Of a stretch of 64,000 nt of DNA, positions 9,293 through 49,388 are shown piece after piece. The DNA is from Ranitomeya imitator. Lineage: Eukaryota. The stretch is from contig NC_091285.1 in the NCBI RefSeq assembly GCF_032444005.1, forward strand, positions 675,056,001 through 675,120,000, read 5' to 3'. The position numbers and the translations under genes are program-made. Within the stretch, counting starts at the first letter, position 1. Each line of letters opens with the position of its first letter. The notes under the pieces were generated by a model. It ran no database searches. It saw only the letters and a list, made by a program, of their open reading frames with translations, and was not told the origin of the DNA.

Positions 9293-10556
9293 CGATTAGC
9301 ACTGGTTGCTATGATTATGCTCTGGTTGCTATGTGATTAGCACTGGTTGCTATGGTTATGATCTGGTTGCTATGCGATTAGCACTATTTGCTATGGTTAT
9401 GCTCTCATTGCTATGTGATTAGCACTGGTTGCCATGGTTATGCTCTGGTTGCTTTGGTTATGATCTGGTTGCGATGTGATTAGCACTGGTTGCTATAGTT
9501 ATGATCTGGTTGCTATGGTTATGATTTGGTCGCTATGTACTTAGCACTGGTTGCCAAGGTTATGCTCTGGTTATGCTCTGGTTGCTATGTGGTTAGCACT
9601 GGTTGCCAAGGTTATGCTCTGGTTGCTCTGGTTACACTCTGGTTGCTATGTGCTTAGCACTGGTTGCTATGGTTATGATTTGGTTGTTATGTGATTAGCA
9701 CTGATTGCTCTGCTTATTCTCTGGTTGCTATGTGGTTAGCACTGGTACCTATGGTTATTCACTGGTTGCTATGGTTATGATCTGGTTAATATGTGATTAG
9801 CATTGGTTGCTATGGTTATGCTCTGGTTGCTATGGTTATGATCTGGTTACTATGTGATTAGCACTGGTTGCTATGGTTATGCTCTGGTTACTATGAGATT
9901 AGCACTGATTGCCATGGTTACGCTCTTGTTGCTATGGTTATCTGGTTGTTATGTGATTAGCACAGGTTGCTATGGTTATGCTCTGGTTACTATGTGGTTA
10001 GCACTGGTTGCTATGGTTATGCTCTGGTTGCTATGTGGTTAGTACTGGTTGCTATGGTTATGCTCAAGTTGCTATGTGGTTATCACTGGTTGCTATGGTT
10101 ACACTGTGGTTACTATGGAATTAATAGCGGTTGCTAGGGTTGTGCTGTGGTCAGAGGTGATGAGCAGAGGTTGCTATGGTTACACTGTGGTTATAAGGTG
10201 ATTAGAACAGGTTGCTATGGTTATGCTCTGGTTACTATGTGGTTAGCACTGGTTGCTATGGTTATGCACTGGTTGCTATGTGGTTAGCACTGGTTGCTAT
10301 GGTTATGCTCTAGTTGCTATGTGGTTAGAATTGGTTGCTATGGTTACACTGTGGTTACTATGGAATTAATAGCGGTTGCTAGGGTTGTGCTGTGGTCAGA
10401 GGTGATGAGCAGAGGTTGCTATGGTTACACTGTGGTTATAAGGTGATTAGCACTGGTTGCTATGATTACACAGTGGTTGCTATGCGATTAATAGTGGTTG
10501 CTAAGGTTATGCTGTGGTTAGAGGTGATGAGGAGAGGTAACTATGGTTATGCTCTG
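9293..10556. repeat. Minisatellite of 20/21-bp subunits (41-bp dimer GATTAGCACTGGTTGCTATGGTTATGCTCTGGTTGCTATGT) abutting the PELP1 promoter
   Basis: Core GGTTGCTATG repeated dozens of times. Confidence 0.9.
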
Positions 10557-10559
10557 GCG

Positions 10560-10860: not shown

Positions 10861-13800
10861 ATGTGACCACTACCCCCATCATCCCCGGTGTACCACTACC
10901 CCCATCATCCCCGGTGTACCACTACCCCCATCATCCCCCTATCCCCGGTGTACCACTACCCCCGTCATCCCCCTAGCCCCGGTGTACCACTACCCCCATC
11001 ATCCCCCTATCCCCGGTCTACCACTACCCCCGTCATCCCCCTAGCCCCGGTGTACCACTACCCCCATCATCCCCCTATCCCCGTTGTACCACTACCCCCA
11101 TCATCCCCCTATCCCCGGTCTACCACTACCCCCATCATCCCCCTAGCTCCGGTGTACCACTACCCCCATCATCCCCCTATCCCCGGTGTACCACTACCCC
11201 CATCATCCCCCTAGCTCCGGTGTACCACTACCCCCATCATCCCCCTATCCCCGGTGTACCACTACCCCCATCATCCCCCTATCCCCGGTCTACCACTACC
11301 CCCATCATCCCCCTAGCTCCGGTGTACCACTACCCCCATCATCCCCCTATCCCCGGTGTACCACTACCCCCATCATCCCCGGTGTACCACTACCCCCATC
11401 ATCCCCCTATCCCCGGTGTACCACTACCCCCGTCATCCCCCTAGCTCCGGTGTACCACTACCCCCATCATCCCCCTATCCCCGGTGTACCACTACCCCCA
11501 TCATCCCCCTATCCCCGGTCTACCACTACCCCCATCATCCCCCTAGCTCCGGTGTACCACTACCCCCATCATCCCCCTATCCCCGGTGTACCACTACCCC
11601 CATCATCCCCCTAGCCCCGGTGTACCACTACCCCCATCATCCCCCTAACCCCGGTCTACCACTACCCCCATCATCCCCCTAGCTCCGGTCTACCACTACC
11701 CCCGTCATCCCCCTAGCCCCGGTGTACCACTACCCCCATCATCCCCCTATCCCCGGTCTACCACTACCCCCATCATCCCCCTATCCCCGGTCTACCACTA
11801 CCCCCGTCATCCCCCTAGCCCCGGTCTACCACTACCCCCATCATCCCCCTATCCCCGGTCTACCACTACCCCCATCATCCCCCTATCCCCGGTCTACCAC
11901 TACCCCCATCATCCCCCTATCCCCGGTCTACCACTACCCCCATCATCCCCCTATCCCCGGTCTACCACTACCCCCATCATCCCCCTATCCCCGGTCTACC
12001 ACTACCCCCGTCATCCCCCTAGCGCCGGTCTACCACTACCCCCATCATCCCCCTATCCCCGGTCTACCACTACCCCCGTCATCCCCCTATCCCCGGTCTA
12101 CCACTACCCCCGTCATCCCCCTATCCCCGGTCTACCACTACCCCCATCATCCCCCTATCCCCGGTCTACCACTACCCCCATCATCCCCCTATCCCCGGTC
12201 TACCACTACCCCCATCATCCCCCTATCCCCGTTGTACCACTACCCCCATCATCCCCCTATCCCCGGTCTACCACTACCCCCATCATCCCCCTAGCTCCGG
12301 TGTACCACTACCCCATCATCCCCCTATCCCCGGTGTACCACTACCCCCATCATCCCCCTATCCCCGGTGTACCACTACCCCCATCATCCCCCTATCCCCG
12401 GTGTACCACTACCCCCATCATCCCCCTATCCCCGGTGTACCACTACCCCCATCATCCCCCTATCCCCGGTCTACCACTACCCCCATCATCCCCCTATCCC
12501 CGGTCTACCACTACCCCCATCATCCCCCTAGCTCCGGTGTACCACTACCCCCATCATCCCCCTATCCCCGGTGTACCACTACCCCATCATCCCCCTATCC
12601 CCGGTGTACCACTACCCCCATCATCCCCCTAGCCCCGATGTACCACTACCCCCGTCATCCCCCTAGCCCCGGTGTACCACTACCCCCGTCATCCCCCTAG
12701 CCCCGGTGTACCACTACCCCCATCATCCCCCTATCCCCGGTGTACCACTACCCCCGTCATCCCCCTATCCCCGGTGTACCACTACCCCCATCATCCCCCT
12801 AGCCCCGGTGTACCACTACCCCCATCATCCCCCTATCCCCGGTGTACCACTACCCCCATCATCCCCCTATCCCCGGTGTACCACTACCCCCGTCATCCCC
12901 CTAGCCCCGGTGTACCACTACCCCCATCATCCCCCTATCCCCGGTGTACCACTACCCCGTCATCCCCCTAGCCCCGGTGTACCACTACCCCCATCATCCC
13001 CCTAGCCCCGGTGTACCACTACCCCCATCATCCCCCTAGCCCCGGTGTACCACTACCCCCATCATCCCCCTATCCCCGGTGTACCACTACCCCCGTCATC
13101 CCCCTAGCCCCGGTGTACCACTACCCCCATCATCCACCTATCCCCGGTGTACCACTACCCCCATCATCCCCCTATCCCCGGTGTACCACTACCCCCGTCA
13201 TCCCCCTAGCCCCGGTGTACCACTACCCCCATCATCCCCCTATCCCCGGTGTACCACTACCCCCGTCATCCCCCTAGCCCCGGTGTACCACTACCCCCAT
13301 CATCCACCTATCCCCGGTGTACCACTACCCCCATCATCCCCCTATCCCCGGTGTACCACTACCCCCGTCATCCCCCTAGCCCCGGTGTACCACTACCCCC
13401 ATCATCCCCCTAGCCCCGGTGTACCACTACCCCCGTCATCCCCCTAGCCCCGGTGTACCACTACCCCCATCATCCCCGGTGTACCACTACCCCCATCATC
13501 CCCCTAGCCCCGGTGTACCACTACCCCCATCATCCCCCTATCCCCGGTGTACCACTACCCCCATCATCCCCCTAGCCCCGGTGTACCACTACCCCCGTCA
13601 TCCCCCTAGCCCCGGTGTACCACTACCCCCATCATCCCCCTATCCCCGGTGTACCACTACCCCCGTCATCCCCCTAGCCCCGGTGTACCACTACCCCCGT
13701 CATCCCCCTAGCCCCGGTGTACCACTACCCCCGTCATCCCCCTAGCCCCGGTGTACCACTACCCCCATCATCCCCGGTGTACCACTACCCCCATCATCCC

Positions 13801-16800
13801 CCTAGCCCCGGTGTACCACTACCCCCATCATCCCCCTATCCCCGGTCTACCACTACCCCCGTCATCCCCGGTGTACCACTACCCCCGTCATCCCCGGTGT
13901 ACCACTACCCCCATCATCCCCGGTGTACCACTACCCCCATCATCCCCCTAGCCCCGGTCTACCACTACCCCCGTCATCCCCCTAGCCCCGGTGTACCACT
14001 ACCCCCGTCATCCCCCTAGCCCCGGTGTACCACTACCCCCGTCATCCCCCTAGCCCCGGTGTACCACTACCCCCATCATCCCCGGTGTACCACTACCCCC
14101 ATCATCCCCCTATCCCCGGTGTACCACTACCCCCATCATCCCCCTATCCCCGGTGTACCACTACCCCCATCATCCCCCTATCCCCGGTGTACCACTACCC
14201 CCGTCATCCCCCTAGCCCCGGTGTACCACTACCCCCATCATCCCCCTATCCCCGGTCTACCACTACCCCCGTCATCCCCGGTGTACCACTACCCCCGTCA
14301 TCCCCGGTGTACCACTACCCCCATCATCCCCGGTGTACCACTACCCCCATCATCCCCCTAGCCCCGTGTACCACTACCCCCATCATCCCCCTATCCCCGG
14401 TCTACCACTACCCCCATCATCCCCGGTGTACCACTACCCCCATCATCCGCCTAGCCCCGTTGTACCACTACCCCTGTCATCCCTCTAGCCCTGGTGTACC
14501 ACTACCCCCATCATCCCCGGTGTACCACTACCCCCGTCATCCCCCTAGCCCCGGTGTACCACTACCCCCGTCATCCCCCTAGCCCCGGTGTACCACTACC
14601 CCCATCATCCCCCTATCCCCGGTCTACCACTACCCCCATCATCCCCCTATCCCCGGTCTACCACTACCCCCGTCATCCCCCTAGCCCCGGTCTACCACTA
14701 CCCCCATCATCCCCCTAGCCCCGGTCTACCACTACCCCCGTCATCCCCCTAGCCCCGGTCTACCACTACCCCCGTCATCCCCCTAGCCCCGGTGTAACAC
14801 TACCCCCGTCATCCCCCTAGCCCCGGTGTACCACTACCCCCGTCATCCCCCTAGCCCCGGTGTACCACTACCCCCATCATCCCCCTATCCCCGGTGTACC
14901 ACTACCCCCATCATCCCCCTATCCCCGGTGTACCACTACCCCCGTCATCCCCCTAGCCCCGGTGTACCACTACCCCCATCATCCCCCTAGCCCCGGTGTA
15001 CCACTACCCCCATCATCCCCCTATCCCCGGTCTACCACTACCCCCGTCATCCCCCTAGCCCCGGTGTACCACTACCCCCGTCATCCCCGGTGTACCACTA
15101 CCCCCATCATCCCCGGTGTACCACTACCCCCATCATCCCCCTAGCCCCGTGTACCACTACCCCCATCATCCCCCTATCCCCGGTCTACCACTACCCCCAT
15201 CATCCCCGGTGTACCACTACCCCCGTCATCCCCCTAGCCCCGGTGTACCACTACCCCCATCATCCCCGGTGTACCACTACCCCCATCATCCCCGGTGTAC
15301 CACTACCCCCATCATCCCCCTAGCCCCGTTGTACCACTACCCCCGTCATCCCCCTATCCCCGGTGTACCACTACCCCCATCATCCCCCTAGCCCCGGTGT
15401 ACCACTACCCCCGTCATCCCCCTAGCCCCGGTGTACCACTACCCCCATCATCCCCCTATCCCCGGTGTACCACTACCCCCATCATCCCCGGTGTACCACT
15501 ACCCCCATCATCCCCCTAGCCCCGGTGTACCACTACCCCCATCATCCGCCTAGCCCCGTTGTACCACTACCCCTGTCATCCCTCTAGCCCTGGTGTACCA
15601 CTACCCCCATCATCCCCGGTGTACCACTACCCCCGTCATCCCCCTAGCCCCGGTGTACCACTACCCCCGTCATCCCCGGTGTACCACTACCCCCATCATC
15701 CCCCTATCCCCGGTCTACCACTACCCCCGTCATCCCCCTAGCCCCGGTGTACCACTACCCCCGTCATCCCCGGTGTACCACTACCCCCATCATCCCCGGT
15801 GTACCACTACCCCCGTCATCCCCCTAGCCCCGGTGTACCACTACCCCCATCATCCCCGGTGTACCACTACCCCCATCATCCCCCTATCCCCGGTCTACCA
15901 CTACCCCCGTCATCCCCCTAGCCCCGGTGTACCACTACCCCCGTCATCCCCCTAGCCCCGGTGTACCACTACCCCCGTCATCCCCCTAGCCCCGGTGTAC
16001 CACTACCCCCGTCATCCCCCTAGCCCCGGTGTACCACTACCCCCATCATCCCCCTAGCCCCGGTGTACCACTACCCCCATCATCCCCCTATCCCCGGTGT
16101 ACCACTACCCCCATCATCCCCCTATCCCCGGTGTACCACTACCCCCGTCATCCCCCTAGCCCCGGTGTACCACTACCCCCGTCATCCCCCTAGCCCCGTT
16201 GTACCACTACCCCCATCATCCCCCTATCCCCGGTGTACCACTACCCCCATCATCCCCCTAGCCCCGGTGTACCACTACCCCCGTCATCCCCCTAGCCCTG
16301 TTGTACCACTACCCCCATCATCCCCCTAGCCCCGGTGTACCACTACCCCCATCATCCCCGGTGTACCACTACCCCCGTCATCCCCCTAGCCCCGTTGTAC
16401 CACTACCCCCATCATCCCCCTAGCCCCGGTGTACCACTACCCCCATCATCCCCCTAGCCCCGGTGTACCACTACCCCCATCATCCCCCTAGCCCCGGTGT
16501 ACCACTACCCCCATCATCCCCCTAGCCCCGGTGTACCACTACCCCCGTCATCCCCCTAGCCCTGTTGTACCACTACCCCCATCATCCCCCTAGCCCCGGT
16601 GTACCACTACCCCCATCATCCCCGGTGTACCACTACCCCCGTCATCCCCCTAGCCCCGTTGTACCACTACCCCCGGTGTACCACTACCCCCATCATCCCC
16701 CTATCCCCGGTGTACCACTACCCCCATCATCCCCCTAGCCCCGGTGTACCACTACCCCCGTCATCCCCCTAGCCCTGTTGTACCACTACCCCCATCATCC

Positions 16801-19800
16801 CCCTAGCCCCGGTGTACCACTACCCCCATCATCCCCCTAGCCCCGGTGTACCACTACCCCCGTCATCCCCCTAGCCCCGGTGTACCACTACCCCCGTCAT
16901 CCCCCTAGCCCCGGTGTACCACTACCCCCATCATCCCCCTATCCCCGGTGTACCACTACCCCCATCATCCCCGGTGTACCACTACCCCCGTCATCCCCCT
17001 AGCCCCGTTGTACCACTACCCCCATCATCCCCCTAGCCCCGGTGTACCACTACCCCCATCATCCCCCTAGCCCCGGTGTACCACTACCCCCGTCATCCCC
17101 CTAGCCCCGGTGTACCACTACCCCCATCATCCCCCTATCCCCGGTGTACCACTACCCCCATCATCCCCCTAGCCCCGTTGTACCACTACCCTCATCATCC
17201 CCCTAGCCCCGGTGTACCACTACCCCCATCATCCCCGGTGTACCACTACCCCCGTCATCCCCCTAGCCCCGTTGTACCACTACCCCTGTCATCGCTCTAG
17301 CTCTGGTGTACCACTACCCCCATCATCCCCCTAGCCCCGGTGTACCACTACCCCCATCATCCCCCTAGCCCCGGTGTACCACTACCCCCGTCATCCCCCT
17401 AGCCCCGGTGTACCACTACCCCCGTCATCCCCCTAGCCCCGGTGTACCACTACCCCCGTCATCCCCCTAGCCCCGGTGTACCACTACCCCCATCATCCCC
17501 CTAGCCCCGGTGTACCACTACCCCCGTCATCCCCCTAGCCCCGGTGTACCACTACCCCCTTCATCCCCCTATCCCCGGTGTACCACTACCCCCATCATCC
17601 CCCTATCCCCGGTGTACCACTACCCCCGTCATCCCCCTAGCCCCGGTGTACCACTACCCCCGTCATCCCCCTAGCCCCGGTGTACCACTACCCCCGTCAT
17701 CCCCCTAGCCCCGGTGTACCACTACCCCTGTCATCCCCCTAGCCCCGGTGTACCACTACCCCCGTCATCCCCCTAGCCCCGGTGTACCACTACCCCTGTC
17801 ATCCCCCTAGCCCCGGTGTACCACTACCCCCATCATCCCCCTATCCCCGGTGTACCACTACCCCCGTCATCCCCCTAGCCCCGGTCTACCACTACCCCCA
17901 TCATCCCCCTATCCCCGGTGTACCACTACCCCCGTCATCCCCCTAGCCCCGGTCTACCACTACCCCCGTCATCCCCCTAGCCCCGTTGTACCACTACCCC
18001 CGTCATCCCCCTAGCCCTGGTGTACCATTACCCCCATCATCCCCCTATCCCCGGTGTACCACTACCCCCATCATCCCCCTAGCCCCGTTGTACCACTACC
18101 CCCATCATCCCCCTAGCCCCGTTGTACCACTACCCCCATCATCCCCCTAGCCCCGGTGTACCACTACCCCCATCATCCCCCTAGCCCCGGTGTACCACTA
18201 CCCCCATCATCCCCGGTGTACCACTACCCCCGTCATCCCCCTAGCCCCGTTGTACCACTACCCCTGTCATCGCTCTAGCCCTGGTGTACCACTACCCCCA
18301 TCATCCCCCTAGCCCCGGTGTACCACTACCCCCGTCATCCCCCTAGCCCCGGTGTACCACTACCCCCGTCATCCCCCTAGCCCCGGTGTACCACTACCCC
18401 CGTCATCCCCCTAGCCCCGGTGTACCACTACCCCCGTCATCCCCCTAGCCCCGGTGTACCACTACCCCCGTCATCCCCCTAGCCCCGGTGTACCACTACC
18501 CCCATCATCCCCCTAGCCCCGGTGTACCACTACCCCCGTCATCCCCCTAGCCCCGGTGTACCACTACCCCCGTCATCCCCCTAGCCCCGGTGTACCACTA
18601 CCCCCGTCATCCCCCTAGCTCCGGTGTACCACTACCCCCATCATCCCCCTAGCCCCGGTGTACCACTACCCCCATCATCCCCCTAGCTCCGGTGTACCAC
18701 TACCCCCATCATCCCCCTAGCCCCGGTGTACCACTACCCCCATCATCCCCCTAGCCCCGGTGTACCACTACCCCCATCATCCCCCTAGCCCCGGTGTACC
18801 ACTACCCCCATCATCCCCCTAGCCCCGGTGTACCACTACCCCCATCATCCCCCTAGCCCCGGTGTACCACTACCCCCATCATCCCCCTAGCCCCGGTGTA
18901 CCACTACCCCCATCATCCCCCTAGCCCCGGTGTACCACTACCCCCATCATCCCCCTAGCCCCGGTGTACCACTACCCCCATCATCCCCCTAGCCCCGGTG
19001 TACCACTACCCCCATCATCCCCCTAGCCCCGGTGTACCACTACCCCCATCATCCCCCTAGCCCCGGTGTACCACTACCCCCATCAGGAGCAGGTTTTGTG
19101 ACGCTGTTTCCTCTGATTTCAGGCCTCCTCTGCTGCAGTCTCCGGCCTCCTCAGCTGCTGTAACTCTCACCTGCTGTCTGCAGCCACCCGGTATGTACCT
19201 GCGGTGGCGCGCCCGTTTGCCCCGTGCCCGCCGCTGCCCCCTATGTCCCCCGCCGTGTGCTGATCTGTGGGTGTCTTGCAGGACTGAGGGGCTGTCGCTG
19301 CTCTCGCTGGTTGTGGAGGAGTCCTGCACAGATGTGTTCCAGCAGCACTGTGTCTCCTGGATCCGCAGCGTCCTGCAGGTCATACAGGTGAGGTGCCGGG
19401 TGGTCTGTAGCCATGGTGACTGCTGGGCGGTCTGTAACCATGGCAATATATAGGTGTGTGTATACAGTAGTTCCACAGGTCCCTGTGTCGCCCAGGCCTG
19501 ACTCTTCCTGTCCTCGGTAAGTGTGTGGGTCACCGCCTCTGATTTGGCCCGTTCTCCCCATATCCTGAAATGCTCTGTGCTGCGGGTGTGTGTGCCGCGG
19601 GGGGGGGGGGGGGGAAGGGCTGTGCCGCAGGGGGCCGTGCCGCGGTGACTGCAGGTGATGAGCGTCCGACTCTTCTTTCAGAGTGGAACAGACGTGGATG
19701 AAGAGGAGATGAAGCGCTGCGCCCTGCAGGTGCTCTGTCCGGGGTCTCCTCACTGGGCTCGGGGTCTCCCACCACTCTCTAGTCCAGCACTGGGTGCTGT

Positions 19801-28323: not shown

Positions 28324-31300
28324 ATCTCTCTCTGATTTAAGGGCATGAAAATTCAAAGTTGGTAAAATTGCGAAATTTTCACCAAATTTGCATTTTTTTT
28401 CACAAATAAACACAACTAATGTCTAGGAAATGTTACCACTATCATGAAGTACAATATGTCACGAGAAAACAATGTCAGAATCTCCGGGATCCGTTGAAGC
28501 GTTCCAGAGTTATAACCTCATAAAGGGACAGTGGTCAGAATTTGAAAAAATTGGCCCGGTCATTAACGTGCAAACCACCCTTGGGGGTAAAGGGGTTAAA
28601 AAATCAAAAATATATATAAAAAAGTTCAAATCTTCGCCCAGTCAAAGTAAAAACATAACAAAAATACAGACATTTGTTATCGCCACGTTCAGAATCGCCC
28701 GATCTATCAAACTATTAATTAAACCGATCGTTAAACGGCGTAACGAGAAAACAATCAGTGCATTACTGCATATCCAGGACGTGTGGTCAGGGTGGGCCGC
28801 GTTACTGTTGCACTTCTATCCAAGGTCTCACCCGTGTGTTTTGCAGGGGACAGTTCCCGGCTCCGGTGCGGGTTCCAGTCTCCGATATCCTCAATCTGGT
28901 TTGTCGAGTGGTCAACGTGAGCGCCAAGAACTTGGTAAGAACCTCGTGGGGTGGTGATGGCGGCAGCGTCGCCCTCCTCCCACCATCCGTACGTCGCTGG
29001 TCATGGTGTCCTTGTGTTGCAGAGCTGGCAGGGTGAGGAGGCTCTGAAGCTGCTGCTGCTGCCCGGAGTCCACAAGACGGCCCTGGACATCCTGGAGGCC
29101 GCCATACTGGCGTGAGTAGCACCGCTCCTGATCTCTTGTGGGGTCTTCACCCTGGGCTGCTCCGTACCCCCGGCTGTGTCTCTTCCCCAGGTGCGGTCCT
29201 CGTCTCCTGCCGCTCTCGTCCGTCATCTGCAGATTATTTCCACAACTCCTCAGCTCCTGGGCATCTGTAAGAGGAGCAGGCGGGTTCCCATCTGGGCAGG
29301 AGAAGCCTTATAGGTGGGTGTCTGTCGCCGATGTAGTCTGCGGGGTCCTGCCGCCATCTTTCCTCTGTTTCCTACATTACTGTGTGATGCTTTATTCCAG
29401 CTCACTCCGGGGGGCCGTCTACCGGGTCCTGGAGCGCTGGGTAACCGTGTGCGGAGTCTCGGCTGGCGTCTTGCAAGGCATGGCGCACCACTCAGATATA
29501 CTGCTGGCACATCTGCTCAGTGACATCACTCCGCCCGCAGATTCCCTGAAGGTGAGACCCGCCGCCACTTACTCTTCCCTTGTCGTCCTCTTTGTCTCCC
29601 CCAGTCGTCCCCCCTTCCCCCGGTCGTTCCCCCTTGCCCCGGTCATCCGTCCGTCCCCCCTTTCCCTTCCCCCTTGCCCCGGTCGTTCCCCCCCCCCCCC
29701 CCTTGCCCCGGTCGTTTCCCTTCCCCCTTTCCCCGGTTGTCCGTCCATCCCCCCTTTCCCTTCCCACTTGCCCCGGTCGTCCGTCCCCCCCTTTCCCTTC
29801 CCCCTTGCCCCAGTCGTTTCTCCCCCTTGCCCCGGTCGTTTCTCCCCCCTTGCCCCGGTTGTCCGTCCATCCCCCCTTTCCCTTCCCCCTTGCCCCGGTC
29901 GTTTCCCCCCCTTGCCCCGGTTGTCCGTCCGTCCATCCCCCCCTTTCCCTTCCCCCTTGCCCCGGTCGTCCGTCCCCCCTTTCCCTTCCCCCTTGCCCTG
30001 GTCGTTCCCCCCCCCCCCTTGCCCCAGTCGTTTCCCCCCCTTGCCCCAGTCGTTTCCCCCCCTTGCCCCGATTGTCCGTCCGTCCCCCCTTTCCCTTCCC
30101 CCTTGCCCCGGTCGTTTCTCCCCCCTTGCCCCGGTTGTCCGTCCATCCCCCCTTTCCCTTCCCCCTTGCCCCGGTCGTCCCCCCCTTGCCCCGGTCGTCC
30201 CCCCTTGCCCCGGTCGTCCGTCCGTCCCCCCTTTCCCTTCCCCCTCGGTCTTCTCTCCCTCGTCCCCCCTTTTCCTTCCCCCTTGCCCCGGTCATCTGTC
30301 AGTCCCCCCTTTCCCTTCCCCCTTGCCCCGGTCGTTCCCCCCCCCCTTGCCCCGGTCGTTTCCCTTCCCCCTTTCCCCGGTTGTCCGTCCATCCCCCCCT
30401 TTCCCTTCCCACTTGCCCCGGTCGTCCGTCCCCCTTTTCCCTTCCCCCTTGCCCCAGTCGTTTCTCCCCCTTGCCCCGGTCGTTTCTCCCCCCTTGCCCC
30501 GGTTGTCCGTCCATCCCCCCTTTCCCTTCCCCCTTGCCCCGGTCGTCTGTCCCCCCTTTCCCTTCCCCCTTGCCCCGGTCGTTTCCCCCCCTTGCCCCGG
30601 TTGTCAGTCCATCCCCCCCTTTCCCTTCCCCCTTGCCCCGGTCGTCCGTCCCCCCTTTCCCCGGTCGTCCGTCCCCCCTTTCCCCGGTCGTCCGTCCCCC
30701 CTTTTCCTTCCCCCTCGGTCTTCACTCTCCCTCGTCCCCCCTTTTCCTTCCCCCTCGGTCTTCACTCTCCCTCGTCCCCCCTTTTCCTTCCCCCTCGGTC
30801 TTCACTCTCCCTCGTCCCCCCTTTTCCTTCCCCCTCGGTCTTCGCTCTCCCTCGTCCCCCCTTTCCCTTCCCCCTCGGTCTTCGCTCTCCCTCGTCCCCC
30901 CTTTTCCTTCCCCCTCGGTCTTCACTCTCCCTCGTCCCCCCTTTCCCTTCCCCCTCGGTCTTCACTCTCCCTCGTCCCCCCTTTTCCTTCCCCCTCGGTC
31001 TTCACTCTCCCTCGTCCCCCCTTTCCCTTCCCCCTCGGTCTTCACTCTCCCTCGTCCCCCCTTTTCCTTCCCCCTCGGTCTTCACTCTCCCTCGTCCCCC
31101 CTTTTCCTTCCCCCTCGGTCTTCACTCTCCCTCGTCCTCCCTTTTCCTTCCCCCTCGGTCTTCACTCTCCCTCGTCCCCCCTTTTCCTTCCCCCTCGGTC
31201 TTCACTCTCCCTCGTCCCCCCTTGCCCCTCGGTCTTCACTCTCCCTCGTCCCCCCTTCCCCTTGCCCCTCGGTCTTCACTCTCCCTCGTTCCCCTTGCCC

Positions 31301-34300
31301 CTCGGTCTTCACTCTCCCTCGTCCCCCCTTCCCCTTCGGTCTTCACTCTCCCTCGTCCCCCCTTCCCCTTGCCCCTCGGTCTTCACTCTCCCTCGTCCCC
31401 CCTTCCCCTTGCCCCTCGGTCTTCACTCTCCCTCGTCCCCCCTTCCCCTTCCCCCTCGGTCTTCACTCTCCCTCGTCCCCCCTTTCCCTTCCCCCTTGCC
31501 CCGGTCGTTTCCCCCCCTTGCCCCGGTCGTCCGTCCCCCCTTTCCCCGGTCGTCCGTCCCCCCTTTCCCTTCCCCCTTGCCCCGGTCGTTCCCCCCCCCC
31601 CCCCCTTGCCCCGGTCGTTTCTCCCCCCTTGCCCCGGTTGTCCGTCCATCCCCCCTTTCCCTTCCCCCTTGCCCCGGTCGTTCGTCCCCCCTTTCCCTTC
31701 CCCCTTGCCCCGGTCGTTCGTCCCCCCTTTCCCTTCCCCCTTGCCCCGGTCGTTCCCCCCCCCCCTTTCCCTTCCCCCTCGGTCTTCACTCTCCCTCGTT
31801 CCCCTTGCCCCTCGGTCTTCACTCTCCCTCGTCCCCCCCTTCCCCTTGCCCCTCGGTCTTCACTCTCCCTCGTCCCCCCTTCCCCTTGCCCCTCGGTCTT
31901 CACTCTCCCTCGTCCCCCCTTCCCCTTCCCCCTCGGTCTTCACTCTCCCTCATCCCCACTTTCCCTTCCCCCTCGGTCTTCACTCTCCCTCGTCCCCCCT
32001 TCCCCTTCCCCCTCGGTCTTCACTCTCCCTCATCCCCACTTTCCCTTCCCCCTCGGTCTTCACTCTCCCTCGTCCCCCCTTTTCCTTCCCCCTCGGTCTT
32101 CACTCTCCCTCGTCCCCCCTTTTCCTTCCCCCTCGGTCTTCACTCTCCCTCGTCCCCCCTTTTCCTTCCCCCTCGGTCTTCACTCTCCCTCGTCCCCCCT
32201 TTTCCTTCCCCCTCGGTCTTCACTCTCCCTCGTCCTCCCTTTTCCTTCCCCCTCGGTCTTCACTCTCCCTCGTCCCCCCTTTTCCTTCCCCCTCGGTCTT
32301 CACTCTCCCTCGTCCCCCCTTGCCCCTCGGTCTTCACTCTCCCTCGTCCCCCCTTGCCCCTCGGTCTTCACTCTCCCTCGTCCCCCCTTGCCCCTCGGTC
32401 TTCACTCTCCCTCGTCCCCCCTTGCCCCTCGGTCTTCACTCTCCCTCATCCCCCCTTCCCCTTGCCCCTCGGTCTTCACTCTCCCTCGTTCCCCTTGCCC
32501 CTCGGTCTTCACTCTCCCTCGTCCCCCCCTTCCCCTTGCCCCTCGGTCTTCACTCTCCCTCGTCCCCCCTTCCCCTTGCCCCTCGGTCTTCACTCTCCCT
32601 CGTCCCCCCTTCCCCTTGCCCCTCGGTCTTCACTCTCCCTCGTCCCCCCTTCCCCTTCCCCCTCGGTCTTCACTCTCCCTCGTCCCCCCTTGCCCCTCGG
32701 TCTTCACTCTCCCTCGTCCCCCCTTCCCCTTCCCCCTCGGTCTTCACTCTCCCTCGTCCCCACTTTCCCTTCCCCCTCGGTCTTCACTCTCCCTCGTCCC
32801 CCCTTGCCCTTCACTCTCCCTCGTCCCCCCTTGCCCCTCGGTCTTCACTCTCCCTCGTCCCCCCTTCCCCTTGCCCCTCGGTCTTCACTCTCCCTCGTCC
32901 CCCCTTTCCCTTGCCCCTCGGTCTTCACTCTCCCTCGTCCCCCCTTTCCCTTGCCCCTCGGTCTTCACTCTCCCTCGTCCCCCCTTTCCCTTGCCCCTCG
33001 GTCTTCACTCTCCCTCGTCCCCCCTTGCCCCTCGGTCTTCACTCTCCCTCGTCCCCCCTTCCCCTTCCCCCTCGGTCTTCACTCTCCCTCGTCCCCACTT
33101 TCCCTTCCCCCTCGGTCTTCACTCTCCCTCGTCCCCCCTTGCCCTTCACTCTCCCTCGTCCCCCCTTGCCCCTCGGTCTTCACTCTCCCTCGTCCCCCCT
33201 TCCCCTTGCCCCTCGGTCTTCACTCTCCCTCGTCCCCCCTTTCCCTTGCCCCTCGGTCTTCACTCTCCCTCGTCCCCCCTTTCCCTTGCCCCTCGGTCTT
33301 CACTCTCCCTCGTCCCCCCTTTCCCTTGCCCCTCGGTCTTCACTCTCCCTCGTCCCCCCCTTCCCCCTCGGTCTTCACTCTCCCTCGTCCCCACTTTCCC
33401 TTCCCCCTCGGTCTTCACTCTCCCTCGTCCCCCCTTGCCCTTCACTCTCCCTCGTCCCCCCTTGCCCTTCACTCTCCCTCGTCCCCCCTTGCCCCTCGGT
33501 CTTCACTCTCCCTCGTCCCCCCTTCCCCTTGCCCCTCGGTCTTCACTCTCCCTCGTCCCCCCTTCCCCTTGCCCCTCGGTCTTCACTCTCCCTCGTCCCC
33601 CCTTCCCCTTCCCCCTCGGTCTTCACTCTCCCTCGTCCCCCTTCCCCTTGCCCCTCGGTCTTCACTCTCCCTCGTCCCCCCTTCCCCTTGCCCCTCGGTC
33701 TTCACTCTCCCTCGTCCCCCCTTCCCCTTGCCCCTCGGTCTTCACTCTCCCTCGTCCCCCCTTCCCCTTGCCCCTCGGTCTTCACTCTCCCTCGTCCCCC
33801 CTTCCCCTTGCCCCTCGGTCTTCACTCTCCCTCGTCCCCCCTTCCCCCTCGGTCTTCACTCTCCCTCGTCCCCCCTTCCCCCTCGGTCTTCACTCTCCCT
33901 CGTCCCCCCTTCCCCTTGCCCCTCGGTCTTCACTCTCCCTCGTCCCCCCTTCCCCTTGCCCCTCGGTCTTCACTCTCCCTCGTCCCCCCTTTCCCTTGCC
34001 CCTCGGTCTTCACTCTCCCTCGTCCCCCCTTTCCCTTGCCCCTCGGTCTTCACTCTCCCTCGTCCCCCCTTTCCCTTGCCCCTCGGTCTTCACTCTCCCT
34101 CGTCCCCCCTTCCCCTTGCCCCTCGGTCTTCACTCTCCCTCGTCCCCCCTTCCCCTTGCCCCTCGGTCTTCACTCTCCCTCGTCCCCCCTTCCCCTTGCC
34201 CCTCGGTCTTCACTCTCCCTCGTCCCCACTTCCCCTTGCCCCTCGGTCTTCACTCTCCCTCGTCCCCCTTCCCCCTTGGTCTTCACTCTCCCTCGTCCCC

Positions 34301-37300
34301 CCTTCCCCTTGCCCCTCGGTCTTCACTCTCCCTCGTCCCCCCTTCCCCTTGCCCCTCGGTCTTCACTCTCCCTCGTCCCCCCTTCCCCTTGCCCCTCGGT
34401 CTTCACTCTCCCTCGTCCCCCCTTCCCCTTGCCCCTTGGTCTTCACTCTCCCTCGTCCCCCCTTCCCCCTCGGTCTTCACTCTCCCTCGTCCCCCCTTCC
34501 CCCTCGGTCTTCACTCTCCCTCGTCCCCCCTTCCCCTTGCCCCTCGGTCTTCACTCTCCCTCGTCCCCCCTTGCCCCTCGGTCTTCACTCTCCCTCGTCC
34601 CCCCTTTCCCTTGCCCCTCGGTCTTCACTCTCCCTCGTCCCCCCTTTCCCTTGCCCCTCGGTCTTCACTCTCCCTCGTCCCCCCTTTCCCTTGCCCCTCG
34701 GTCTTCACTCTCCCTCGTCCCCCCTTCCCCTTGCCCCTCGGTCTTCACTCTCCCTCGTCCCCCCTTCCCCTTGCCCCTCGGTCTTCACTCTCCCTCGTCC
34801 CCCCTTCCCCTTGCCCCTCGGTCTTCACTCTCCCTCGTCCCCCCTTCCCCTTGCCCCTCGGTCTTCACTCTCCCTCGTCCCCCCTTCCCCTTCCCCCTCG
34901 GTCTTCACTCTCCCTCGTCCCCCCTTTCCCTTGCCCCTCGGTCTTCACTCTCCCTCGTCCCCCCTTTCCCTTGCCCCTCGGTCTTCACTCTCCCTCGTCC
35001 CCCCTTTCCCTTGCCCCTCGGTCTTCACTCTCCCTCGTCCCCCCTTCCCCTTGCCCCTCGGTCTTCACTCTCCCTCGTCCCCCCTTCCCCTTGCCCCTCG
35101 GTCTTCACTCTCCCTCGTCCCCCCTTCCCCTTCCCCCTCGGTCTTCACTCTCCCTCGTCCCCCCTTCCCCCTCGGTCTTCACTCTCCCTCGTCCCCCCTT
35201 CCCCTTGCCCCTCGGTCTTCACTCTCCCTCGTCCCCCCTTTCCCTTTCCCCTCGGTCTTCACTCTCCCTCGTCCCCCCTTCCCCTTGCCCCTCGGTCTTC
35301 ACTCTCCCTCGTCCCCCCTTCCCCTTGCCCCTCGGTCTTCACTCTCCCTCGTCCCCCCTTCCCCTTGCCCCTCGGTCTTCACTCTCCCTCGTCCCCCCTT
35401 CCCCTTCCCCCTCGGTCTTCACTCTCCCTCGTCCCCCCTTCCCCCTCGGTCTTCACTCTCCCTCGTCCCCCCTTCCCCTTCCCCCTCGGTCTTCACTCTC
35501 CCTCGTCCCCCCTTCCCCTTCCCCCTCGGTCTTCACTCTCCCTCGTCCCCCCTTCCCCCTCGGTCTTCACTCTCCCTCGTCTCTGCAGATGTCCAGCTTT
35601 GTACAGTTAGGAGCCAAGAAGCAGAAAGTCTCGGAGATCGGGAACGGCGAATTTCAAAGTCACCGGAAACGAGAAGGCGGCGCAAATACGGAGCTGTGTG
35701 CGGCGGCACTACGGGGTGAGATGAACGACTTGTAGATGTCTGTGGGGGATGGGAAGCACCAGGGGCTTTGGAAACCCCTTATCAAGTGTCTTTACGGGAA
35801 TTCGGAGATGGAGGGGGTCCTTGTGTGTCCCCCGACCTCTCACCGTTCTCACCTGTCTCTTTTCTAGCCCTCTGCGCCATTGTCCTGTATGGAGGATCCG
35901 TAATCAAGGATGACTGTCACCGGGTGAGTGGGCGTCTCCGGGGGTCTGTCTTGGGAACAGTGACCTCTTTATATTAAGGTCTCAGGGGTAACGTTTCTCC
36001 TTGTGGCGAGTGACATGCCGCCTCTGATCAGCTGTGCAATGCTCCTCTGGGAAATTTAATATGCAAATTGCCTCTTCGGAGGAGGACTTGCCCTCTACAG
36101 CGCCACCTGTTGGAAGCAGCGATCCTATGTCGCCATCGCCCCTTTAGCAATATGACTTAGGATAATGCAAGGCTCGTTAGAGGGTCGTTGGCGACTTGTA
36201 GGATCGCTGCTTCCAGCAGGTGGCGCTGTGGAGCTCTAGTCTGCCTCTCTGAAGTCAGCTTCCATCTTTTATATTGGACACATCTGGTTGGCTCTTCAGC
36301 CTCATATCTGATGCCACCATGTGGACACGCTGTGGTATTGCACACCGTGCCTTCTGTGTATACGGCGCAGTGAGGGGCAGCAGGAGTCAAGTGTGAAGTC
36401 CAGCGTCTCCAGTGGGGTTACATGACGTAAGATCTGCGGCCGCCGGCCTGGAATACAAGAGATTGCCCAAACCTCCAGCCAGCACCTTGTGTGACAAGGG
36501 GAGGAACACCGAGTAGTATGTAGGGAGCACAAAGGAGGGCACCGTGGCTGGGGGGGCACAATAAGGGCATTATTTCTTGGTTATGGGGGGCGCAAAAGGC
36601 GGAATTAGTCTTATAAGGGGCACAAAAAGAACATTATTACAATGTAGGGGATGTCAAAAGGGGACAAAAAGGGGGTTCTTTTACTATGTGGAGGATACAA
36701 AGGGGGCATTATTACTATGTGGGGGATACAAAGATGTGCTATTACTATGGGGAACACAAAAAGGCCACTGTTACTATGTGGGGAAAGCTATTACTATGGA
36801 GGACACGGGGGCGCTATTACTATGGAGGACACGGGGGCGCTATTACTATGGAGGACACGGGGGCGCTATTACTATGGAGGACACGGGGGCGCTATTACTA
36901 TGGAGGACACGGGGGCGCTATTACTATGGAGGACACGGGGGCGCTATTACTATGGAGGACACGGGGGCGCTATTACTATGGAGGACACGGGGGCGCTATT
37001 ACTATGGAGGACACGGGGGCGCTATTACTATGGAGGACACGGGGGCGCTATTACTATGGAGGACACGGGGGCGCTATTACTATGGAAGCACATAGTTGGT
37101 GACGATATACAGGGACACAGCATGTGGGGGACATGGCTGACTACTACATGGAGTATTGCAAAGAGTTGTTGAAAAGTTTTGTGTGCGCAGCACGGTGGTC
37201 TTTCGTGGCACAGCTGCGCGGTAGTATGGGCGCTGTACGGTGGTTGGCACATCTGAGGTTGGTATAGGTGGTGCACGGTGGTGTTTGATTGGTATGGTGA

Positions 37301-40300
37301 GGCGTTGGCGCCCTCGCAGTGTGATGAGGCGATAGCGCCCTCGTAGTGTGATGAGGCGTTGGCGCCCTCGCAGTGTGATGAGGCGTTGGCGCCCTCGTAG
37401 TGTGATGAGGCGTTGGCGCTCTCGCATTGTGATGAGGCGATAGCGCCCTCGTAGTGTGATGAGGCGTTGGCGCCCTCGCAGTGTGATGAGGCGTTGGCGC
37501 CCTCGCACTGTGATGAGGCGTTGGCGCCCTCGCAGTGTGATGAGGCGTTGGCGCCCTCGCAGTGTGATGAGGCGTTGGCGCCCTCGCAGTGTGATGAGGC
37601 ATTGGCGCCCTCGCAGTGTGATGAGGCGTTGGCGCCCTCGCAGTGTGATGAGGCGTTGGCGCTCTCGCAGTGTGATGAGGCGTTGGCGCCCTCGCAGTGT
37701 GATGAGGCTTTGGCGCCCTCGCAGTGTGATGAGGCGTTGGCGCTCTCGCAGTGTGATGAGGCGTTGGCGCTCTCGCAGTGTGATGAGGCGTTGGCGCTCT
37801 CGCATTGTGATGAGGCTTTGGTGCCCTCGCACTGTGATGAGGCGTTGGCGCTCTCGCATTGTGATGAGGCGATAGCGCCCTCGTAGTGTGATGAGGCGTT
37901 GGCGCCCTCGCAGTGTGATGAGGCGTTGGTGCTCTCGCAGTGTGATGAGGCGTTGGCGCTCTCGCAGTGTGATGAGGCGTTGGCGCTCTCGCAGTGTGAT
38001 GAGGCGTTGGCGCTCTCGCATTGTGATGAGGCTTTGGTGCCCTCGCACTGTGATGAGGCGTTGGCGCTCTCGCATTGTGATGAGGCGATAGCGCCCTCGT
38101 AGTGTGATGAGGCGTTGGCGCCCTCGCAGTGTGATGAGGCGTTGGTGCTCTCGCAGTGTGATGAGGCATTGGCGCCCTCGCAGTGTGATGAGGCGTTGGC
38201 GCCCTCGCAGTGTGATGAGGCGTTGGCGCTCTCGCACTGTGATGAGGCGTTGGCGCTCTCGCATTGTGATGAGGCGATAGCGCCCTCGTAGTGTGATGAG
38301 GCGTTGGCGCCCTCGCAGTGTGATGAGGCGTTGGCGCCCTCGCAGTGTGATGAGGCATTGGCGCCCTCGCAGTGTGATGAGGCGTTGGCGCCCTCGCAGT
38401 GTGATGAGGCGTTGGCGCTCTCGCAGTGTGATGAGGCGTTGGCGCCCTCGCAGTGTGATGAGGCTTTGGCGCCCTCGCAGTGTGATGAGGCGTTGGCGCT
38501 CTCGCAGTGTGATGAGGCGTTGGCGCTCTCGCAGTGTGATGAGGCGTTGGCGCTCTCGCAGTGTGATGAGGCGTTGGCGCTCTCGCATTGTGATGAGGCT
38601 TTGGTGCCCTCGCACTGTGATGAGGCGTTGGCGCTCTCGCATTGTGATGAGGCGATAGCGCCCTCGTAGTGTGATGAGGCGTTGGCGCCCTCGCAGTGTG
38701 ATGAGGCGTTGGTGCTCTCGCAGTGTGATGAGGCGTTGGCGCTCTCGCAGTGTGATGAGGCGTTGGCGCTCTCGCATTGTGATGAGGCTTTGGTGCCCTC
38801 GCACTGTGATGAGGCGTTGGCGCTCTCGCATTGTGATGAGGCGATAGCGCCCTCGTAGTGTGATGAGGCGTTGGCGCCCTCGCAGTGTGATGAGGCGTTG
38901 GTGCTCTCGCAGTGTGATGAGGCGTTGGCGCCCTCGCAGTGTGATGAGGCGTTGGTGCTCTCGCAGTGTGATGAGGCGTTGGCGCTCTCGCAGTGTGATG
39001 AGGCGATAGCGCCCTCGTAGTGTGATGAGGCCTTGGCGCCCTCGCAGTGTGATGAGGCCTTGGCGCCCTCGCAGTGTGATGAGGCCTTGGCGCCCTCGCA
39101 GTGTGATGAGGCCTTGGCGCCCTCGCAGTGTGATGAGGCCTTGGCGCCCTCGCAGTGTGATGAGGCCTTGGCGCCCTCGCAGTGTGATGAGGCCTTGGCG
39201 CCCTCGCAGTGTGATGAGGCCTTGGCGCCCTCGCAGTGTGATGAGGCCTTGGCGCCCTCGCAGTGTGATGAGGCCTTGGCGCCCTCGCAGTGTGATGAGG
39301 CCTTGGCGCCCTCGCAGTGTGATGAGGCGATAGCGCCCTCGTAGTGTGATGAGGCCTTGGCGCCCTCGCAGTGTGATGAGGCCTTGGCGCCCTCGCAGTG
39401 TGATGAGGCCTTGGCGCCCTCGCAGTGTGATGAGGCCTTGGCGCCCTCGCAGTGTGATGAGGCCTTGGCGCCCTCGCAGTGTGATGAGGCCTTGGCGCCC
39501 TCGCAGTGTGATGAGGCCTTGGCGCCCTCGCAGTGTGATGAGGCCTTGGCGCCCTCGCAGTGTGATGAGGCCTTGGCGCCCTCGCAGTGTGATGAGGCCT
39601 TGGCGCCCTCGCAGTGTGATGAGGCCTTGGCGCCCTCGCAGTGTGATGAGGCGTTGGCGCCCTCGTAGTGTGATGAGGCGTTGTTGTTACTCTTGCACCG
39701 TGGTCAAGTCTTGGTGCTGTGGATTTGTCTCGCTCGCGCTATGATGAGGCCTTGGCGCCCTTGCTGTGTGATGAGGCCTTGGCGCCCTCGCTGTGTGATG
39801 AGGCCTTGGCGCCCTCGCAGTGTGATGAGGCGTTGGCGCTCTCGCAGTGTGATGAGGCGTTGGCGCTCTCGCAGTGTGTTGAGGCGTTGGCGCTCTCGCA
39901 GTGTGATGAGGCGTTGGCACCCTCGCACGATGAGGCCTTGGCGCCCTCGCAGTGTGATGAGGCCTTGGCGCCCTCGCAGTGTGATGAGGCGTTGGCGCCC
40001 TCTATCAGACTGTTCCTCTCCCCGCAGCGCCTCCAGGAGCTCTCCATCCCCCTCCTGATCCGCCTGCAGCAGGGTCCCGACCAGTGGACGGGTCCGTACA
40101 CCAGCAGCGAGTGTCGGAAACAGCTGTATCGGCTGCTGCTGTCCCTGACGCTGAGCCCCAGCCCGCGCCTCCCTGCCCCCCTGCACTGTGCCATCCGGAT
40201 CTTCAGAGTGGGGCTGACCGAGGAGAACTTACAGGTAGGAGGGCGGACATGATGAATATGGGAGTGCTGGGATTTGTAGTGTCACTTCTCACGGTTTTCC

Positions 40301-47527: not shown

Positions 47528-47961
47528 TTAAGAGGCTCCTCTGTCCTCCACTCATAACCTGTAGTAATGACACCTGTTTGAACTTATCAGTATAAAAGAC
47601 CCCTATCCACAACCTCCAGCAGTCACACTCCAAACTCCACTATGGTGAAGACCAAAGAGCTGTGGAAGGACACCAGAAACAAAATTGTAGCCCTGCACCA
47701 GGCTGGGAAGACTGAATCTGCAATAGGCAAGCAGCTTGGTGTGATGAAATCAACTGTGGGAGCACTAATAAGAAAATGGAAGACAAACAAGACCACTGAT
47801 AATCTCCCTCGATCTGGGGCTCCACGCAAGATCTCACCCCGTGGGGTTAAAATGATCACAAGAACGGTGAGCAAAAAATCCCAGAACCACGCGGGGGGAC
47901 CTAGTGAATGACCTACATGGAACTGGGACCACCGTAACAAAGGCTATCATCAGAAACACCT

Positions 47962-48775
<814 letters not shown>

Positions 48776-49388
48776 TGACTGATCCGGGTACATGAAAGAA
48801 TGAATGGGGCCATGTATCGTGAGATTTTGAGTGCAAACCTCCTTCCATCAGCAAGGGCATTGAAGATGAAATGTGGATGGTTCTTTCAACATGATAAAGA
48901 TGCCAAGCACACCACCAGGGCAACGAAGGAGTGGCTTCGTAAGAAGCATATGAAGGTCCTGGAGTGGCCTAGCCAGTCTCCAGATCTCAACCCCATAGAA
49001 AACCTTTGGAGGGAATGGAAAGTCCGTGCTTCTCAGGCCCAAAACATCACTGCTCTAGAGGAGATCTGCATGGAGGAATGGGCCAACATACCACCAACAG
49101 TGTGTGGCAACCTTGTGAAGACTTACAGAAAACGTTTGACCTCTGTCATTGCCAACAAAGGATATATTACAAAGTATTGAGATGAAATTTTGTTAATGAC
49201 CAAATATTTATTTTCCATCATAGTTTGCTAAATAAATCAGACGCGGTGATTTCTGGATTTGTTTTCTCATTGTGACTCTCATAGTTGTGGTCTATCTATG
49301 ATGTCAATTACAGGCCTCATCTTTCTAAATGGGAGAACTTGCACTATTGGTGGCCGACTAAACACTTTTGTTCCCCACTGTGTATATA

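Follow-up and report, generated by a model that had tools for sequence, protein, structure and literature searches.

Minisatellites can grow inside introns at the boundary of a splice site, as in IVS7 of the human F7 gene, which carries a 37-bp VNTR of this kind (PMC1557585). Long AG-exclusion zones upstream of 3′ splice sites form a second class of related structures. In Gooding et al. 2006, the zone of PTB exon 11 measures about 380 nt, with a branch point at −351, that of GABBR1 exon 23 measures 287 nt and that of Fugu PTB 590 nt (PMC1431707). A third related structure is the 2.5-kb pyrimidine-rich element in PKD1 intron 21 (PMC11667243).

Here we analyse intron 12 of PELP1 in the mimic poison frog Ranitomeya imitator, within a 64,000-nt stretch of contig NC_091285.1 (hereafter the window; all coordinates are window positions). 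Almost 5 kb upstream of the acceptor of exon 13 are free of AG and consist largely of a tandem array. The analysis demonstrates the anatomy of this array, its origin, its states across a series of species and the correct junctions of the mRNA. The array is very probably a young, lineage-specific and tolerated minisatellite derived from intron sequence next to the splice site, and not a regulatory device.

Anatomy and splicing of PELP1 intron 12

Intron 12 of R. imitator spans 29552-35588 (6,037 nt) and is nearly all repeat; minisatellites make up about 64% of the PELP1 gene span. The intron and its neighbouring exons contain the following features.

29401-29551, + strand: PELP1 coding exon 12, ending in CTGAAG and encoding a segment that ends in TPPADSLK
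29552-29614, + strand: donor GT (29552-29553) and unique 5′ end of the intron; 2 nt differ from R. variabilis in the first 63 nt
29599-30692, + strand: older, degenerate array of units based on about 23 nt (CCCCGGTCG type); 60-77% matches in TRF
30608-35586, + strand: AG-free stretch, from the AG count; reproduced in a second assembly
30693-31489, + strand: young array of 40-nt units, block one, from TRF and the unit map
31490-31775, + strand: older-type units embedded within the young array, from the sequence; a 323-nt 'unit' in the unit map
31776-35581, + strand: young array of 40-nt units, main block, with units of 40, 34, 33 and 27 nt
35564-35570, + strand: last TCTTCAC, with its A at 35569 (−20)
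35582-35588, + strand: unique TCTGCAG tail including the acceptor AG (35587-35588), from the sequence; exon 13 starts at 35589 in four runs
35589-35715, + strand: PELP1 coding exon 13 (127 nt); joint 35715 to 35868 with GT..AG in four runs
35868-35923, + strand: PELP1 coding exon 14 (56 nt), from transcript contigs

The exons were analysed individually, and full-length proteins were taken from databases. The open reading frame running through exon 12 matches PELP1_HEAT (Pfam, E = 1.9e-23), and tblastn places both a PELP1 ortholog and the RefSeq R. imitator PELP1 at 29401-29551. Transcript contigs of 2.9-3.6 kb, from four runs in four studies, join exon 12 to 35589, 35715 to 35868 and 35923 to exon 15, the loose end past 35923 being the start of exon 15 at 40028. 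The exon 12-13 junction was taken from the loose-end consensus of these contigs (in one of them, the final 30 nt of exon 12 form the loose end attached to 35589) and agrees with the junction in the RefSeq R. imitator protein, where ADSLK is followed by MSSFVQLG. PELP1 mRNA is still produced from the authentic acceptor despite the array. Exon 13 is included in the sole form found in the contigs of the four studies; this describes assembled Logan contigs, which minor isoforms could escape and in which rare isoforms, retention and lariats are invisible. Rfam gives no matches across 29000-36500.

After an AG at 30606-30607, the next one is the acceptor itself, 4,981 nt away start to start, with 4,979 nt free of AG between them. 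The preliminary description had noted this absence by eye, and both the computed count and the second assembly agree with it. The runner-up AG-free gap within the 64-kb window is 299 nt. Between 30608 and 35588 there are 2827 C, 1546 T, 478 G and 130 A. The stretch is 88% pyrimidine, its longest pure pyrimidine runs reaching 22-28 nt, and it contains 118 copies of CTTCAC, 114 of TCTTCAC and 121 matches to yUnAy. The preliminary description had pictured some 115 units, nearly all with essentially one A in the branch motif followed by a pure pyrimidine tract. The A's do fall mostly in one context (118 of the 130 in TTCACTC), but the tract past the A is interrupted by 3-5 G per unit, and two segments (30608-30692 and 31490-31775) are older units without the branch motif. 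The final branch-motif A lies at 35569, 20 nt ahead of exon base 35589, as had been described.

TRF assigns the young array a 40-nt period and 125 copies over 30693-35581, with 88% matches. The 40-nt units (n = 87) vary at 8 columns only and differ by 3% from their consensus. In the unit map, a few variants recur in higher-order blocks of several units, such as EDIGEABBB, as growth by block duplication predicts, and the array ends in the order D-D-F; this block structure comes from the unit-letter map, a long-seed repeat search having given register-shifted copies only. The older array (29599-30692) is without the branch motif, contains seven AGs and carries CCAGTCG five times against 20 copies of CCGGTCG.

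In a second, independent R. imitator assembly (GCA_958301615.1), intron 12 is 6,107 nt long and AG-free for 5,047 nt between flanking AGs. The 5′ AGs match in both assemblies, and AG is absent from the final ~5 kb in both. Several unit-sized indels separate the two arrays. Small indels of the sort that assembly noise produces are also numerous in the second assembly, so true variation may not underlie the unit-sized differences. Positions 35310-35379 are reproduced without mismatch by a 70-nt contig from a public run.

Origin of the repeated unit

The orthologous intron measures 75 nt in Leptodactylus, 75 nt in Bufo, 174 nt in D. tinctorius and 255 nt in R. variabilis, against 6,037 nt in R. 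imitator. The introns of R. variabilis and D. tinctorius were located through their X1 isoform proteins, which differ from the X2 isoforms elsewhere, exon 13 not being involved. A long AG-free zone is absent from all four of these orthologs: the AG-free length is 26 nt in Bufo, 70 nt in Leptodactylus, 72 nt in D. tinctorius and 138 nt in R. variabilis, versus 4,981 nt in R. imitator. CTTCAC likewise occurs once in R. variabilis (at −20) and once in D. tinctorius, compared with 118 copies in R. imitator.

The 40-nt unit is present as a single copy in R. variabilis, where it forms the final ~41 nt preceding CGTCTCTGCAG, and the final 36 intron bases of the two congeners differ at 1 nt. The progenitor segment is bordered by CGTC at either side, and the R. 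variabilis intron holds 2.8 copies of a 33-nt proto-unit. TCTTyA is invariant in six sequences from five species: R. imitator (two assemblies), R. variabilis, D. tinctorius, L. fuscus and B. bufo. The earlier reading of the array as the native 3′ splice-site core amplified in tandem, minus its AG, is thus borne out, since the congener carries the unit once at the end of the intron. As expected of a minisatellite grown at a splice-site boundary, the array has head-to-tail units organized in blocks, homology to the boundary, a lineage-specific copy number and an mRNA made from the authentic site.

We propose that the ancestral PELP1 intron 12 was a C/T-rich intron of about 75 nt. Its stuttering began in dendrobatid frogs, giving the 174 nt of D. 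tinctorius and the 255 nt of R. variabilis, and after the split from R. variabilis, replication slippage or unequal exchange amplified the ~40 nt before −8 about 120-fold in R. imitator. The copied segment comprises the conserved TCTTCAC branch-site candidate and the pyrimidine tract and excludes the TCTGCAG tail; with the tail left outside, each copy is a branch site and tract without an AG. On this reading, the founder segment came from within the stretch before the acceptor that normally lacks AG, the single A of the unit stands in a CAC context, and the array is too young and too homogenized to have gained an AG.

Its position and conservation make the A at 35569 (−20) the likeliest branch point. 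U2AF would recognize the sole AG and its adjoining tract, U2 would pair with the nearest copy (A 35569), and the ~117 upstream copies would be silent or harmless decoys. Because the true acceptor is the first AG downstream of any copy, the mRNA would be unchanged even if an upstream copy were used. We infer that the array is probably neutral. That the ~117 upstream copies are not inert, with a measurable share of lariats at units from hundreds up to thousands of nt upstream or an AG-free state held by selection, appears unlikely.

The missing AG and competing explanations

An independent-base model predicts 12.4 AGs in the AG-free stretch, and none is observed. GA (12.4 expected), TA (40 expected) and AA (3.3 expected) are equally missing, so the lack of AG is a trait of the repeated unit and not specific to AG. 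A different array within the window is GA-free over 6,450 nt. Dinucleotide-preserving shuffles are unusable here because AG stays at zero in them; the controls were instead the other dinucleotides and a count of mutational opportunity. Only 5 of the 120 possible substitutions in the 40-nt unit create an AG, one of them a transition, and with so few mutations about 0.3-1 AG gains would be expected by chance. The CpG-decay classes of the young array are CTTGGTC (2), CTCAGTC (0), CTCATC (3) and CTTGTC (0), and the AG-making class, CTCAGTC, is no emptier than CTTGTC.

Elsewhere in the gene, repeats place AG in acceptor-like contexts in large numbers: CCCCTAG occurs 137 times in the intron 1 array and CTCGCAG 67 times in that of intron 14. 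Both pseudo-acceptor arrays are tolerated and correctly removed. The preliminary description's idea of a special exclusion zone, whether selected or functional, finds no support in these results: GA, TA and AA are at zero as well, independent mutations are too few, the AG-bearing arrays of introns 1 and 14 are tolerated, and exons 12, 13, 14 and 15 are joined normally in four studies.

The strongest competitor, though an unlikely one, is that purifying selection actively keeps the stretch AG-free by removing alleles that gain an AG. As the unit is a branch site with its tract, a strong cryptic acceptor would need no more than a single CGG to CAG change, with the new AG about 31 nt beyond the A of the preceding unit. 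The change from CTCGGTC to CTCAGTC needs only a CpG transition, and none is seen at 113 target sites in the two assemblies. Mis-splicing is known to result when an AG arises within an AG-exclusion zone (PMC1431707; PMC9284458). Against selection, the whole young array shows only about five CpG decays, the equally likely CTTGTC class is empty too, and the expected number of AG gains is as low as given above; introns 1 and 14, moreover, tolerate pseudo-acceptors that bear an AG. With a cryptic acceptor placed kilobases ahead of the exon 13 donor, the exon so defined would also be unusually long, and such exons are disfavoured by vertebrate exon definition.

A further contrast was considered as a sign of AG avoidance, that between CCAGTCG in 5 of ~25 sites of the older array and CTCAGTC in 0 of the 113 CTCGGTC sites of the young one. 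It was rejected as evidence on two grounds: CpG decay of every kind has gone much further in the older array, and part of the CAGs there are ancestral, since R. variabilis and D. tinctorius have them too.

A functional splicing element, either a landing pad whose many branch points include very distant ones or a sponge that adjusts exon 13 inclusion by binding U2AF65, SF1, PTBP1 or PCBP, is highly unlikely. The zone does offer 118 yUnAy-type sites, 116 UCUU and 626 overlapping CCCC, and in human, distant branch points and alternative splicing are over-represented among exons that have long AG-free zones (Gooding et al. 2006, PMC1431707). However, the branch candidate that is conserved occupies the canonical −20 position, in contrast to the distant-branch-point class, and the array is missing in the congener and in every other frog checked, so it has no conserved function. 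Contigs of the four studies show only the form that includes exon 13, skipping of this 127-nt exon would shift the frame, and the nascent RNA of one gene would be a negligible sink relative to all cellular introns.

Effects at the DNA level, in which G-quadruplex, i-motif or H-DNA structures of a 6-kb pyrimidine-rich coding strand and its G-rich template could slow transcription or replication and destabilize the locus, are very improbable. The pyrimidine content of 88% and 84 non-overlapping (C3+N1-7)x4 motifs on the + strand, equivalent to G4 motifs on the template strand, point in this direction, as do the several unit-sized indels between the assemblies and the precedent of the 2.5-kb PKD1 intron 21 tract (PMC11667243). 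Pure-pyrimidine mirror repeats, by contrast, number only 17, with arms of 8-9 nt and hence weak H-DNA potential; PELP1 is expressed, with full-length contigs in four studies; and the small-indel noise of the second assembly means that the unit-sized differences may be unreal. Near-identical long arrays are difficult to assemble, but an artefact in which array length or sequence is wrong and true reads contain AG is extremely unlikely, given that two separate assemblies (6,037 and 6,107 nt) agree on the 5′ AGs and the AG-free final ~5 kb and that the 70-nt public-run contig is identical to 35310-35379.

Comparison with known systems

With the array read as a tolerated minisatellite, PELP1 adds to a picture in which minisatellites of poison-frog genes can expand massively, as far as the splice sites, and still be tolerated. 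The frogs provide a natural series with one unchanged acceptor in an expressed and conserved gene, from a single branch-site and tract copy (R. variabilis and D. tinctorius) to ~118 (R. imitator), which could reveal how the spliceosome settles on one of many identical branch sites and over what distance the second step can search. Were upstream copies active, or the AG-free state under selection, the R. variabilis and R. imitator pair would be a natural test of the 3′ splice-site search distance, the sole AG being reached across kilobases of AG-free RNA in the lariat case.

Like the zones in Gooding et al. 2006, the PELP1 stretch lies AG-free (4,979 nt) upstream of a 3′ splice site, far exceeds the usual tens of nucleotides and is rich in pyrimidines and PTB-type motifs. 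It differs from them in being made of repeats and not conserved between species, and its conserved branch candidate is found at −20 and not, as in that class, at the far (5′) end with no good one close to the acceptor. No alternative splicing is seen in the contigs, and GA, TA and AA are also absent. At about 5 kb it is roughly ten times the length of the longest zones discussed for vertebrate introns, yet it precedes a constitutive exon and is a by-product of repeat growth.

PKD1 intron 21 and the PELP1 array both present a kilobase-scale pyrimidine-rich coding strand in an intron of an expressed gene. In PELP1, unlike PKD1, 3-5 purines per 40 nt interrupt the tract and mirror repeats are short. 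Assignment to H-DNA tracts of the PKD1 IVS21 type was considered and is weak: long perfect homopyrimidine mirror repeats were not found, the longest pure run being 28 nt.

F7 IVS7 and the PELP1 array both amplify a splicing signal through head-to-tail copies of sequence at an exon/intron boundary, with a lineage-specific copy number, and in both the mRNA comes from the authentic, exon-adjacent site. The two differ in the signal that is copied: F7 multiplies donors, whereas the PELP1 segment ends 7 nt before the exon and multiplies a branch site and tract without the AG.

PELP1, its intron 12 and its minisatellites

The gene is PELP1: the Pfam PELP1_HEAT family matches an open reading frame through 29401-29551 (E = 1.9e-23), and the PELP1 proteins of Leptodactylus fuscus and R. 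imitator (RefSeq XP_069623419.1) align to 10687-45760 exon by exon. Counted from this protein-to-window exon mapping, coding exon 13 is the one that starts at 35589. The intron in front of it is organized as follows (forward strand).

29551: end of exon 12; donor GT at 29552-3
29552-35588: intron 12, 6,037 nt; non-repeat sequence only ~47 nt at the start and 7 nt at the end
29599-30700: older array, more degenerate, of related ~23-nt-based units, 5′ of the young array
30608-35586: AG-free stretch
30693-35581: young array, 40-nt period, 125 copies, 88% matches
31490-31775: 280-nt block of older-type units splitting the young array

Both arrays were delimited with Tandem Repeats Finder, and the window has no N runs. 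Counted over the whole window, one AG lies at 30606-30607 and the next at 35587-35588, with 4,981 nt between their starts; the second-longest AG-free gap in the 64 kb is 299 nt. The preliminary description, which had reported no AG between 30608 and the true acceptor, a TCTTCAC in nearly every unit and a last A at 35569, 20 nt 5′ of exon 13, is borne out on all three points: the zone contains 114 copies of TCTTCAC and 118 of CTTCAC, the final one with its A at that position. TTCACTC accounts for 118 of the 130 A residues. The tract following each A had been described as purely pyrimidine, which is incorrect, as the zone is 88% pyrimidine with 3-5 G per unit. A unit map comprises 24 unit variants and two further entries representing long old-type stretches; the variants are ordered in recurring multi-unit blocks, indicating growth by block duplication. 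A second R. imitator assembly (GCA_958301615.1) gives an intron 12 of 6,107 nt that shares the 5′ AGs and whose final 5,047 nt are AG-free. Relative to the window, this assembly shows a few unit-sized indels along with many indels of 1-9 nt, the latter typical of assembly noise.

Minisatellite makes up ~22.6 kb of the ~35-kb PELP1 span (64%; 10687-45763); the gene spans ~19 kb in Ranitomeya variabilis, 33 kb in Dendrobates tinctorius, 17.5 kb in L. fuscus and 14.8 kb in Bufo bufo. Intron 1 (10866-19085) is nearly all 34-nt minisatellite (247 copies), starting 46 nt past the donor and stopping ~35 nt short of the acceptor of exon 2; R. variabilis has ~62 copies (741-2796 of its locus), and related arrays occur in D. 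tinctorius and L. fuscus. In intron 14, a 27-nt minisatellite (37298-40002; 55 copies in R. variabilis, 12683-14170 of its locus) stops 25 nt short of the exon 15 acceptor (40027), and transcripts still join 35923 to 40028. Upstream of the gene, a GTTGCTATGG-type minisatellite (9294-10557) adjoins the promoter. It also occurs in L. fuscus (20-nt unit, 92 copies; 1-1845 of its locus) and R. variabilis (1-370), and is thus much older than the intron 12 array. Fragmented open reading frames resembling a Tc1/mariner-type transposase lie 3′ of PELP1 (47642-49180).

Origin of the intron 12 array

PELP1 loci of other frogs were obtained via their proteins, and exons 12-14 were placed by blastn.

Intron 12 in frog PELP1 genes (species; intron length; AG-free span upstream of the acceptor)
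Bufo bufo; 75 nt; 26 nt
Leptodactylus fuscus; 75 nt; 70 nt
Dendrobates tinctorius; 174 nt; 72 nt
Ranitomeya variabilis; 255 nt; 138 nt
Ranitomeya imitator (window); 6,037 nt; 4,981 nt

The R. variabilis intron differs from that of R. imitator at one of the last 36 bases and two of the first 63, and contains CTTCAC only once, the A being at -20. One R. imitator unit equals the ~41 nt 5′ of CGTCTCTGCAG in R. variabilis, with CGTC at either side. Because the unit is present there once, at the intron end, the preliminary description was right to see in the array a 3′ splice-site core that was amplified without the AG. The amplification postdates the split from this congener. The T-C-T-T-.-A columns are unchanged in all six aligned frog sequences; this invariance is the best available evidence that the A is probably the real branch point.

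Acceptor use and the missing AG

Logan contigs from four runs, each from a different study, were placed on 35300-36300. Each run yielded one contig of 2.9-3.6 kb covering 35583-35714 and then 35867-35923. The 6-nt overhang to 35583 (one mismatch) arises because the last bases of exon 12 (CTGAAG) align with those of the intron (CTGCAG). On the 5′ side, the loose-end consensus is exon 12 sequence (29517-29546), and the loose end beyond 35923 matches exon 15 from its first base, 40028. Exons 12-13-14-15 are thus joined in the assembled mRNA, using the acceptor at 35587-8, although assembled contigs may miss rare isoforms. The RefSeq R. imitator protein reads ADSLK|MSSFVQLG across the junction. 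Array sequence appeared in the RNA-like runs as only one 70-nt low-depth contig. In all four runs, many short high-depth contigs with divergent flanks match 35980-36250 in intron 14 (summed word depth up to ~5,000); the segment is probably a transcribed, dispersed repeat, for instance a SINE- or MITE-like element. In R. variabilis PELP1, RefSeq isoform X1 has an insert of 16 residues (102-117) that is missing from X2 and R. imitator and unrelated to exon 13.

With independent bases, 12.4 AGs would be expected in the stretch and none is observed; GA (12.4 expected), TA (40) and AA (3.3) are also all absent, and a different array in the window is GA-free over 6,450 nt. Among 87 forty-nt units, variation is confined to 8 columns, with 3% divergence from consensus, mostly at three subfamily columns. 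Only 5 of the 120 single substitutions per unit create an AG, just one of them a transition, at a CpG. For ~8-10 independent substitutions the expected number of AG gains is 0.3-1, which makes zero unremarkable. Within the young array, CpG decay has produced CTTGGTC twice, CTCATC three times, and CTCAGTC and CTTGTC not at all; the AG-making class is thus no emptier than another. The older 5′ array, far more decayed overall, has 7 AGs; at least the first of the CAGs, shared with R. variabilis, is ancestral.

Acceptor look-alikes also abound in other PELP1 minisatellites (137 CCCCTAG in intron 1, 67 CTCGCAG in intron 14). Yet the exon 14-15 junction is correct in transcripts, and the contig sequence 5′ of exon 13 (1,299-1,345 nt) matches the 1,320 nt (440 codons) of upstream spliced coding sequence. 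Tolerance therefore does not need AG-lessness.

In the mechanism we propose, U2AF would bind the sole AG and its adjoining tract, and U2 would pair with the TCTTCAC that is nearest and conserved, with its A at 35569; upstream copies have neither an AG partner nor an exon nearby. Even if an upstream copy served in the first step, the next AG 3′ of it would still be the true acceptor, leaving the product unchanged. A sink for splicing factors, also suggested earlier, is unlikely to matter when it consists of the nascent RNA of one gene. At the DNA level, 30608-35588 carries 84 non-overlapping G-quadruplex motifs on the PELP1 template (minus) strand, which are C-run motifs on the plus strand, and there are 626 overlapping CCCC in the transcript; its H-DNA potential is weak.

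Comparison with known systems

According to Gooding et al. (PMC1431707), AG-exclusion zones of at least 100 nt occur in 838 of 67,334 human introns, distant branch points have been verified at -275 and -351, and the zone of Fugu PTB measures 590 nt. The frog PELP1 zone is about ten times longer than these long zones. However, it lacks two defining features of the distant-branch-point class (PMC1431707): the intron offers a good branch candidate at -20, and its orthologues do not share the long zone. It fits instead with minisatellites that have expanded out of splice-site boundaries, human F7 IVS7 (PMC1557585) among them; what is particular to the PELP1 intron 12 array is that the copied segment leaves out the AG.
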